NCBI GenBank assembly: GCA_009103225.1
Contig: RHPI01001737.1
Span: 508,286 to 572,285, forward strand
Source: Chlorokybus atmophyticus
Taxonomy: Eukaryota > Plantae > Mesostigma and Chlorokybus algae
Length of the DNA: 64,000 bases
Reading direction: 5' to 3'
The translations under genes were made by a program, and so were the position numbers. The notes under the pieces were generated by a model. That model searched no databases, was not told the DNA's origin, and worked only from the letters and a program-made list of their open reading frames with translations. Shown here piece after piece: positions 14,376-28,865 of the stretch (positions are counted from its first letter, which is position 1; each line of letters opens with the position of its first letter).

Positions 14376-16916
14376 ATGGTGGAAAGCTTTGTCGCGGACG
14401 CTGCGAGCGACTTTCTCAGCAACGTGTCCTTTTCTTCCTTCGACACTGACGGCTTGGCTGCGAGCACGAGCAGCAGCTACTTGTACAACAGCAGCAGCGA
14501 TGGTGGGGGCATGCAACCGGAGGTGGCTGGTGCTCTGGTTGCTCAGCGAGAATTCTTGGCGGTTTTTCTCACGGCCGTGTCAGCCATTGGCAAGGTGAGC
14601 GTGTCGGTAATTGATGGTTTGCTGCAAGCTGCTGCGATCAAACACCGCGGTATACTGCATGTTACTACTTTCACGTTTAGCAGCCAAAGTAGGAAACAGA
14701 CAAGGAAGGTTGTACACAGGTGCTGCTCGTGGCTCTCGGTGGAGCATGGATGGCTAGAAAAGGCATCATCAACAACCAAACATCGTCTTCGCTCTCAAAG
14801 GTTCGGTGTCACTTCTCGTAGTTGGAAACTTCGTTATAATTACCGCCGAAGTGCGGGCCAATGTCCGTTTGTGAATGCGTGCGTGCGTCACGCTTGCTGT
14901 GTCTCAATGCCGGAGGCAGCTGTCGCAGTCAGTGCTGTTACGAGCTTTCAAGAGCTTGCCAGCAAGCATGCATAGGCTTGTGGATGTGAAAAACCACATG
15001 CTACGCCTTGTGAAGTGCGGACGCATGTAGGTTGTTTGTTGTTAATACAGCTTGGCAACGTCATGCTGCATGCAGCCGATTGCTGTACACAGCATGTTGT
15101 GGTGCCCCATAGCTGGGCTCATACAGGGGATCTACAGGTTGGGCTCTCGCCAAACTGCATGGTAGTTTTAGAACTATGAGTCGGCACTGACTGGTATTGC
15201 GGTGTGTTCAGCTTATCACCTCGCTGCAAACATAATGACAAAGAATGCCAGCTGGTTTCAGTGACCTGTACGTCATGAGCGCATGGGCATGTTGGACAAA
15301 TTTGTGATTGTTGCACTGACGGTGTATGTTGCGGCAGATGAGCTTTTCGCTGCTGCTCCCCTGCCTTCTGTTCAGCCGGCTGGCAGGTATCCATTTTATT
15401 ACTGTAATTTGGCAACCACTCTACATATGGGATAGTGTTGCCCGTGCATCTACCAAATAGTTGGTTTACATGATTGATCGGGAATGCGAATTACAGCCCA
15501 GAAGGAGCTGGATGAGAAATTGTTGACGCTGTGGACGCTGCCGGCGGGAGCCATTGCTTATGCGGTTGTGGGCGTGGTCCTGGGTGCTATTCTTGTGAGG
15601 GTGCTGCATGTGCCGCCTATCTTCCGCGGCGGTGTGCTCACATCCGTGGCGTTTGGCAACTCCCAAGGCCTGCCCATAGTGCTTCTGGTTGCCATTTGTG
15701 AGGCACATTTCTCACCCGCTGATGAGGACCGCGCCATTGCCTATGTCGCAGTCTACTCCATTGCCTCATCTTTCCTGTTTTGGGGTTTGGGTCCGCACCT
15801 TCTGACCACTGGCCTCGATGACTACACTACACCAGACGGTGGCATTGCTCCAGAAGCTGCTCGTGATCCAAAGCTTATGCGCGTGCTTTCTGCTCATGTA
15901 CAGCGCAAGCTCAGCAGATCCGCCTCGCGCCGCGGCTCACGCGCCAGCAGTGTTGATGGCGGCAACACCCCCGACCAGTCAGTATCCGCTGCTTCCCTTG
16001 ACGAGTGAGTGCTGCCTCGCATGCACACTACAGTGGTCTTTGCGCTTTGAGTTGTTAGTGCTTTTCTTCGAGTGCTTCTGTGACTAAACAAGTTCTTTTG
16101 TAGCTTTGCTCAAAGCGCTCTCCAGCAACCGCTGCTGGCCAACGATGAGCTCAGTTCACCTCACCCCAAAACCCGCCACAGTAGTGCGGCGCCAGCAGCC
16201 AGCCTGCCCCCAATTCCTTCCTTGACCGACATAGCCAATGGCCTACCACCCTCTCAATTTGCAGGACGACCCACAATGCGTACACGGTTGAGCAAGTTTG
16301 TAGTGAAGTCGATCAACGCAGTGCTACAGCCTCCCATCGTGGCACTGATTCTGGGTTCGCTGGTGGGCATGGTGGATGTGTTGTACGATGCTGTGGTCGA
16401 GCGCAACGCACCTGGCCATGTAGTCTGGAGCGCTGCCAATACCATTGGGCAAGCTGCTGTGCCCGTTAACATGCTGCTGCTGGGTGTGCGCCTGCACAAA
16501 GGCCTGGATCGCGAAGAGACCGCTGCCGTGGGCTATTCCCTCATCGGTGCTGTCTGCTTCAGTCGTCTCCTAATCATGCCGGCTGTTGGCCTTGCGCTCA
16601 ATGCCCTGCGCATTCGCTTTGGCTTTAATGATCCTGCTGACCGCATCCTCTGCCTCACCTTCCTTGTCGAGTCTGCTGTACCCACAGCCAACAATAACTT
16701 GGTCAGTACCTGTGAATGGGGTTCGTGTTCGTGCTTGATTCAGGTATTTGCAGTGGTTGATGCTATGGCTGAACTGTTGATGCACGTGTTGTGCAGATTC
16801 TGGCTCGCGCTTTGGAGGTTGACGACAAGGCCATTGCAGTGTTTCTGTTCTTCCAGTATGCAATTGCCCCCATCTTCCTGACGCTGTCCGTAGCTGTGTT
16901 CCTCTACGCTTGCTAG
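14376..16916 (+). CDS. PILS: PIN-LIKES / auxin efflux carrier (AEC, Mem_trans) family transporter; ~6 exons
   Basis: Exons: AVSAIGK|VLLVALGGAWMARKGII..SLSK|MSFSLLLPCLLFSRLA|..AFGNSQGLPIVLLVAIC..AIAYVAVY..LFWGLG|..QPPIVALILG..IGQAAVPVNMLLLG..RLLIMP..ESAVPTANNNL|..FFQY..FLYAC*. Confidence 0.92.
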
Positions 16917-27898: not shown

Positions 27899-28865
27899 TC
27901 ACGTGTTGAGTGCGGCCTCTGCTGCATGGCCCGGTGCGCCACCTGTGAGCGAGAGGGCCCGCCACAGCTCGCGCCCGAGCAGCGCCTCCCCACCCAGCAG
28001 GAAGGTCAGTGCCCACGGCACCAATACCGCTGCGGACACCGCCGCCCCCATGGCACAGCGCCGCACATCTGGTAGATGCAACACAACACGGTGAGCCAAC
28101 GACAAGTAAACCAGTGAGTCCTACACTTACATAAACGCTTAGCGCATGTGCGAGCTGCTGGTGAGTGAATGAGAGTGTGAGCATGAGGGTCAGTGTGTAA
28201 GAGAGTTGTATAATGTGCGTAGGATACACATATGGGGTCATGCAAGAAAGAGGAGTAAAGCATTTGTCTACTGCTTGCACTGCGCAAGCCGCAATGCACA
28301 ACGAGTGCTGCATGTGTGCACTCCCTTCTTCCCCCATGTTCAATCAAGCGTACATGGTTTGGCGGGGTGTGGGTGGGGAGAGCGAAGAATGGGCCAGAAG
28401 TACGCGCACGCCACGCACCACAACCACGGCAAACCCACGAACCCCGCGTAGTACAGTAGATCAAATTGCAGTTAAGGGGGCAGCATGGCTGACTGAAACA
28501 ACGACACAACATAACACAACGCAGTGCGACCATCATCATCACCACCACAGCAGCAGCAGCAGCAGCAGCGACGACAACACAGCAACCTACACAATACAAA
28601 CAACGACGACGATAGCTTTGGCAACACAGCGTGAAAGCAATTCGTGTAACATTGCTTGAATGCGCTTCACATGAGCACAAGAGTGAGCACTACGCAGGAC
28701 AGTTGAACGTAGTAAGGTTGGGGGGATATTTTTCCTAGCGAGCGGCATGGCCTCCTCGTCGCTGACTCCAGCCTCGCCGTCGATGGTGGGGTGCCAAGGC
28801 TCCGCGTGCAGCACCTCAGCCTCGCCGCTGCCGCCTTGCCTGGCGGCGGGCTCCATCTCGTCCAT
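27899..28865 (-). CDS. PEN2: Gamma-secretase subunit PEN-2; 3 exons, first intron AT-AC
   Basis: Spliced product: MDEME..WHPTIDGEAGVSDEEAMPLARK-MYYAGFVGLPWLWCVACAYFWPILRSPHPHPAKP-YVRRCAMGAAVSAAVLVPWALTFLLGGEALLG..*. Matches the plant PEN-2 motifs WPTIDG, GFAxLPWLW and WALTFxxGGE. Confidence 0.93.
28456..28729 (-). other. U12-type (minor spliceosome) AT-AC intron in PEN-2, 274 nt
   Basis: Minus strand: 5' end ATATCCCC, branch CCCCTTAAC (28479-28471), 3' end ..TCTAC. Removal restores R-K-M-Y-Y-A-G-F in frame. Confidence 0.85.

Follow-up and report, generated by a model that had tools for sequence, protein, structure and literature searches.

Transcript contigs and splice signals point to a U12-type AT-AC intron in the PEN-2 gene of Chlorokybus atmophyticus

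The PEN-2 gene and its three-exon transcript

We analyzed a stretch of 64,000 nucleotides of Chlorokybus atmophyticus DNA (the 64-kb window; position 1 is its first letter) and compared four runs (X1, X2, X3, and X4) with it. The four were taken from runs that contained about 40% of the sampled words, as expected for spliced mRNA, and their RNA status was presumed. The evidence from them takes the form of assembled contigs without read counts, and such contigs cannot measure levels. The locus on the minus strand comprises the following features:

28730..28865, minus strand: coding part of PEN-2 exon 1, with its ATG at 28865-28863; 45 codons plus 1 nt, encoding M...WHPTIDGEAGVSDEEAMPLARK
28456..28729, minus strand: PEN-2 intron 1, 274 nt, AT-AC, with U12-type signals, phase 1; joint found in three runs from two studies
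28720..28729, minus strand: 5' splice site of intron 1, reading ATATCCCCCC
28471..28477, minus strand: branch-site core CCTTAAC of intron 1 (branch consensus TCCTTAAC)
28354..28455, minus strand: PEN-2 exon 2, 102 nt, encoding (M)YYAGFVGLPWLWCVACAYFWPILRS...; supported by a PF10251 match and by contigs
28069..28353, minus strand: PEN-2 intron 2, 285 nt, GT-AG (GTACGC...CCAG), phase 1; joint 28068|28354 found in X1, X2, and X3
27899..28068, minus strand: coding part of PEN-2 exon 3, with its TGA at 27901-27899; encodes (Y)VRRCAMGAAV...WALTFLLGGEALLG...; supported by PF10251 and by contigs

The 3' end of exon 1 reads ...GCT AGG AAA A at 28730, intron 1 ends in ...GATCTAC at 28456, and exon 2 begins TG TAC TAC GCG at 28455 (all on the minus strand). 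The split codon A|TG encodes Met, and the protein there reads ...ARK-M-YYAGFVGLPWLW. The transcript contigs gave a three-exon product of 135 residues. Contigs of exon 1 (X1 record 4 and X2 record 5) reach upstream to about 28928, and the 3' UTR extends to at least 27797.

Pfam and PDB searches were made exon by exon, and joined translations were used only for reading-frame tests. The Pfam family PF10251 (PEN-2) matched exon 2 alone with 29.2 bits against a curated cut-off of 25 (E 1.3e-6, profile positions 13-41) and matched exon 3 with 12.8 bits (profile positions 53-88). A phmmer search of PDB with exon 2 alone gave no match. A profile built from an alignment of the exon-2 regions of the Chlorokybus gene and related loci matched chain D of the gamma-secretase structure 5a63, which is human PEN-2, with an E value of 6.4e-7. 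In the alignment to this chain (...LCRK-YYLGGFAFLPFLW...), exon 2 lies against human PEN-2 residues 18-38, and intron 1 interrupts the codon aligned with human Tyr18. Exon 2 is the most conserved part of PEN-2 and codes for the conserved first membrane segment. Judged by these profile matches, the gene is PEN-2, a gamma-secretase subunit.

The joint 28455|28730 was present in contigs of X1 and X3 (study P1) and of X2 (study P2), in each case with exactly 274 nt skipped. On the plus strand the skipped segment has the ends GT..AT, corresponding to AT..AC in the minus-strand reading, and no letter is common to both sides of the joint (no microhomology). One X2 contig of 565 nt (record 5) carried all three exons without a mismatch. 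The contigs of X1 and X3 carry a few SNPs relative to the window, indicating a second strain with the same junction. X4 contained only unspliced pieces and looks genomic. One X1 contig of low depth (record 2, 28426-28759) retained intron 1, and no X1 contig lay inside intron 2; this is suggestive of slower removal of intron 1, which is typical of minor introns. The retaining contig has T for C at intron position +6 (G>A on the plus strand at 28724).

To examine alternative splice sites, every GT-AG, GC-AG, and AT-AC pair lying between exon 1 and the exon-2 motif GF..LPWLW was tested for reading frame. Sixteen pairs preserved the frame and all 16 were AT-AC; no GT-AG or GC-AG pair linked exon 1 to GF..LPWLW in frame. 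The junction seen in the contigs is the AT-AC pair flanked by ATATCC and CCTTAAC. An initial annotation of this DNA, made from the letters alone, had placed an AT-AC intron at 28456-28729 of a PEN-2 gene, with no usable GT nearby and in the register of human LCRK-YYLGGF. Its coordinates were exact. Contigs from three runs join 28730 to 28455 across 28729/28456, and both the frame test and the match to 5a63 chain D agreed with it.

The same annotation had predicted that gene prediction limited to GT-AG introns would mis-annotate the gene, and the public model proved to be such a case. This model (jgi/Chlat1/7425/Chrsp6S07447, P0001; 108 aa) has the same N-terminus as exon 1 and an exon 3 that is 100% identical, and it reads ...MPLARK-NIPPTLL-H-VRRCAMG.... 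Its reading frame continues past the AT donor for 7 codons (28710-28729); a GT some 20 nt into intron 1 is then paired with the intron-2 acceptor, by which exon 2 (28354-28455) is lost. No contig of the examined runs carried the junction of Chlat1 7425, and a word search with the Chlat1 7425 protein at E values up to 10 returned only the match to itself. The model needs correction, as comparisons of plant gamma-secretase otherwise use a broken protein. Annotation of the Chlorokybus genome with GT-AG introns only systematically drops such exons.

Splice signals and type of intron 1

The donor of intron 1, ATATCCCC, was compared with the U12 consensus ATATCCTT. It matched at all six rigid positions (+1 to +6), and positions +7 and +8 are C rather than T. 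The second A of CCTTAAC (28472), the likely branch A, is 16 nt away from the final base of the intron. The spacer between CCTTAAC and the final AC is 14 nt long and is not pyrimidine-rich, and no U2-like CTRAY branch motif was found in the last 45 nt of the intron. Both the branch element near the 3' site and the CC-for-TT deviation at +7/+8 had been pointed out in the initial annotation and are present in the sequence. In human work the optimum for the branch A is 11-13 nt from the 3' end, and the 16 nt of intron 1 is on the long side of this range. Given snRNAs like those of human, the C residues at +7/+8 would weaken pairing with U6atac. Within the intron, at about 28499-28584, there is also low-complexity trinucleotide sequence, with GCT runs followed by GGT/GAT (minus strand), which was left out of the run search as a repeat.

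A scan of the whole 64-kb window with loose donor and branch-site patterns returned many chance pairs, so these motifs alone are weak evidence. The case is made by the U12 motifs sitting exactly at the AT-AC junction defined by RNA. Intron 1 combines AT..AC ends seen in RNA with a U12-type donor and with a branch site that lies 16 nt from the 3' end (about 10-20 nt is expected) and is followed by no pyrimidine tract, the features of a U12-type AT-AC intron. Its phase 1 accords with the known tendency of minor introns to avoid phase 0 (PMC10639083). On the strength of the donor match from +1 to +6, CCTTAAC at 16 nt, the lack of a pyrimidine tract or CTRAY motif, and the phase, we read PEN-2 intron 1 as a U12-type intron of the AT-AC subtype, with a probability of roughly 0.9.

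The main alternative is that intron 1 is a U2-type AT-AC intron removed by the major spliceosome, like the 'AT-AC II' introns of human SCN4A and SCN5A. The donors of such introns resemble AT followed by AAGT or GAGT, with G at +5, and a pyrimidine tract precedes the AC; intron 1 begins ATATCC and shows neither feature, and the C at +5 excludes a U2-type donor. U2-type AT-AC introns do occur (PMC1557818), the homologous introns at five metagenome PEN-2 loci look U2-type, and the donor of intron 1 is off the U12 consensus at +7 and +8. However, ATATCC contrasts sharply with the metagenome donors ATGAGT and ATACGT, and the CCTTAAC core at 16 nt, with neither pyrimidine tract nor CTRAY, is not what this alternative would predict, so that we consider it very unlikely. 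Still less credible is the view that the junction is an artefact (RT template switching, misassembly, or a retrocopy) or a minor isoform and that the two-exon public model is the true mRNA: although the support for the junction comes from assembled contigs rather than reads, from runs whose RNA status is presumed, and one X1 contig keeps the intron, the identical joint without microhomology was found in three runs of two studies and in two SNP-distinct strains, the junction of the public model was seen in no contig, and only the three-exon form holds the conserved PEN-2 core, a form that gap-free alignment with intronless plant loci also fits.

The contigs show the primary transcript cut exactly at A|ATATCC and AC|TG, joining exon 1 to the 102-nt exon 2. 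Under the U12-type reading, and from what is established for minor splicing, the U11/U12 di-snRNP would bind first, with U11 reading the donor ATATCC and U12 reading the branch site CCTTAAC. U4atac/U6atac.U5 would join next, and U6atac would replace U11 at the donor. Catalysis would then involve a non-canonical terminal pair, A at +1 and C at the last position. From the intron signals and the correct removal of the intron we infer a working minor spliceosome in Chlorokybus.

Two further U12-like motifs of the window were considered. The sequence GTATCCT at 28221-28227 (minus strand, inside intron 2) resembles a minor GT donor; it is probably a chance motif, because the contigs splice out intron 2 as a single GT-AG unit. 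A second U12-like intron, with GTATCCGC at 15982 and TTCCTTGAC before 16234, was rejected, as GTGAGT at 16005 and TTTGCAG at 16264 fit better. The gene at 15484-16881 (plus strand), of the Mem_trans family (PF03547, PIN-LIKES-type), holds this best-looking chance pair (GTATCC and TTCCTTGAC). An Rfam search of the 64-kb window at the gathering threshold found no snRNA and no other RNA family, and four long ORFs of the window had no match in Pfam.

Minor introns in streptophytes and in other systems

Larue & Roy (2023, PMC10639083) reported 166 minor introns in Chara braunii and 110 in Klebsormidium nitens, both of them streptophyte algae. Minor introns and their snRNAs are reported for land plants and for these algae and are lacking in Chlorophyta (PMC10639083; PMC11347168). 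The minor introns of Chara and Klebsormidium belong to the same clade (Streptophyta) and the same intron class as the Chlorokybus intron, but Chlorokybus differs from both in representing the earliest-diverging streptophyte lineage. Both cases show a minor spliceosome that persisted beyond the land plants. The initial annotation had set this intron against the loss of the minor spliceosome in model chlorophytes such as Chlamydomonas. The chlorophyte loss stands (PMC10639083, PMC11347168), but the surprise does not: Chlorokybus is a streptophyte, and minor introns are already published for Chara and Klebsormidium. A minor intron in Chlorokybus, inherited in the lineage, is expected by phylogenetic bracketing, and the case is consistent with a minor spliceosome kept since the common ancestor of plants. 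For the streptophyte lineage that diverged earliest, the contigs would add direct evidence, from transcripts, of minor-type splicing. Chlorokybus is not named in the main text or the available supplement of PMC10639083, and our literature search found no paper with both 'Chlorokybus' and 'U12'.

U12-type AT-AC introns of land plants and animals, such as intron 3 of Arabidopsis HD2B (ATATCCTT ... TCCTTAAC ... AC), have the same termini and the same donor positions +1 to +6 as PEN-2 intron 1. The likeness extends to CCTTAAC close to the 3' end, to the lack of a pyrimidine tract, and to a phase other than 0. In contrast to the land-plant and animal consensus, PEN-2 intron 1 has CC instead of TT at +7/+8. 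In the available supplements of a survey of human and mouse minor introns (Olthof 2019), PSENEN is absent. AT5G09310 is likewise absent from the Arabidopsis AT-AC introns in the supplements of the DROL1 and TITAN-LIKE studies, and no paper was found that ties AT5G09310 to U12.

U2-type AT-AC introns are extremely rare: Sheth et al. 2006 (PMC1557818) give 15 for human and none for Arabidopsis. These 'AT-AC II' introns share their terminal dinucleotides with PEN-2 intron 1. However, their U2-like donors and pyrimidine tracts fit the introns of the metagenome loci L008, L015, L024, L022, and L025 described below, and not the Chlorokybus intron.

The intron-1 site in metagenome PEN-2 loci

A degenerate DNA pattern for GF..LPWLW......FWP returned 32 metagenome loci, and all 32 were PEN-2 genes. 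The land-plant-like loci and L032 had no intron at the site of intron 1, as follows:

L001, L002, and L005: Brassicaceae-like, intronless at the site
L009, L014, L016, and L026-L031: second angiosperm-like group, intronless at the site
L007, L004/L019, and L032: others, intronless at the site

In the intronless loci a single open frame extends from Met, by way of ...ARR-FYKFGFALLPWLW..., as far as the site of intron 2. The position of intron 2 and its phase 1 are common to Chlorokybus and the intronless loci, and the land-plant-like frame ends in ...IRN or IRP followed by GTAAG. The intronless land-plant-like loci agree with the absence of AT5G09310 from the Arabidopsis AT-AC lists.

Five algal-like loci carried a putative AT...AC intron that interrupts the same codon behind its first base, in the same phase, with U2-like donors:

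L008, 6579-6837, minus strand: GC 72%; donor ATGAGT; CTAAC with a long pyrimidine tract behind it
L015, 3468-3923, plus strand: GC 60%; donor ATGAGT; a short run rich in T; last 45 nt without a CTRAY match
L024, 636-1079, minus strand: GC 60%; donor ATGAGT; CTGAC 27 nt from the end
L022, 3861-3931, plus strand: GC 52%; donor ATACGT; CTCAC 21 nt from the end, followed by a C-rich pyrimidine stretch
L025, 1142-1295, minus strand: GC 67%; donor ATACGT; CTGAC 17 nt before the end; pyrimidine tract absent

At these five loci only the AT-AC pair gave the gap-free spacing of the intronless loci, and with GT-AG or GC-AG pairs the protein would gain 10-40 unconserved residues. The introns of L015 and L024, a pair of diverged relatives, differ by substitutions and indels, with the ends conserved.

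GT-AG introns were predicted at the same codon and in the same phase in the L006 group (GTATGG...CAG) and in L017 (GTAAGC...CAG):

L006, 10974-11040, minus strand: 67-nt GT-AG intron
L017, 191-257, plus strand: 67-nt GT-AG intron

Near-identical JAABU loci with the 67-nt GT-AG intron at the site were L003, L010-L012, L018, L020, L021, and L023. JAABU contigs derive from metagenomes of cryptoendolithic communities in Antarctica (PMC7171226). Such communities are dominated by lichens with Trebouxia photobionts, and the algae behind the JAABU contigs are for this reason probably chlorophytes.

Descent from an AT-AC minor intron would be the simplest explanation of the AT..AC ends at the five algal-like loci, which makes these five introns candidate U2-type relics of such an intron. 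Intron 1 probably dates back to the ancestor of green plants. The original AT-AC minor intron may have met four fates: it would have been kept in Chlorokybus, turned into a U2-type AT-AC intron in some algae, turned into a GT-AG intron in other algae, and deleted in land plants. Compared across these genomes, the PEN-2 site looks like a series of minor-to-major conversion, and the accepted direction of conversion is from minor to major (PMC10639083; PMC1557818). We give an even chance to the full proposal, in which the AT-AC intron predates the split of chlorophytes and streptophytes and the genomes display every fate (minor-type, in-place conversion to U2-type AT..AC, further conversion to GT-AG, and deletion).

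If true, this would be a natural series at a single site for minor-to-major conversion by way of the very rare U2-type AT-AC state. It would also place conversion in lineages thought to have lost the minor spliceosome; several of the algae with the U2-type AT..AC state are GC-rich and probably chlorophytes. The metagenome comparison thus offers a testable example of how an AT-AC minor intron may be converted when the minor spliceosome is lost. The ORFs neighbouring the metagenome PEN-2 loci yielded only a Myb domain.
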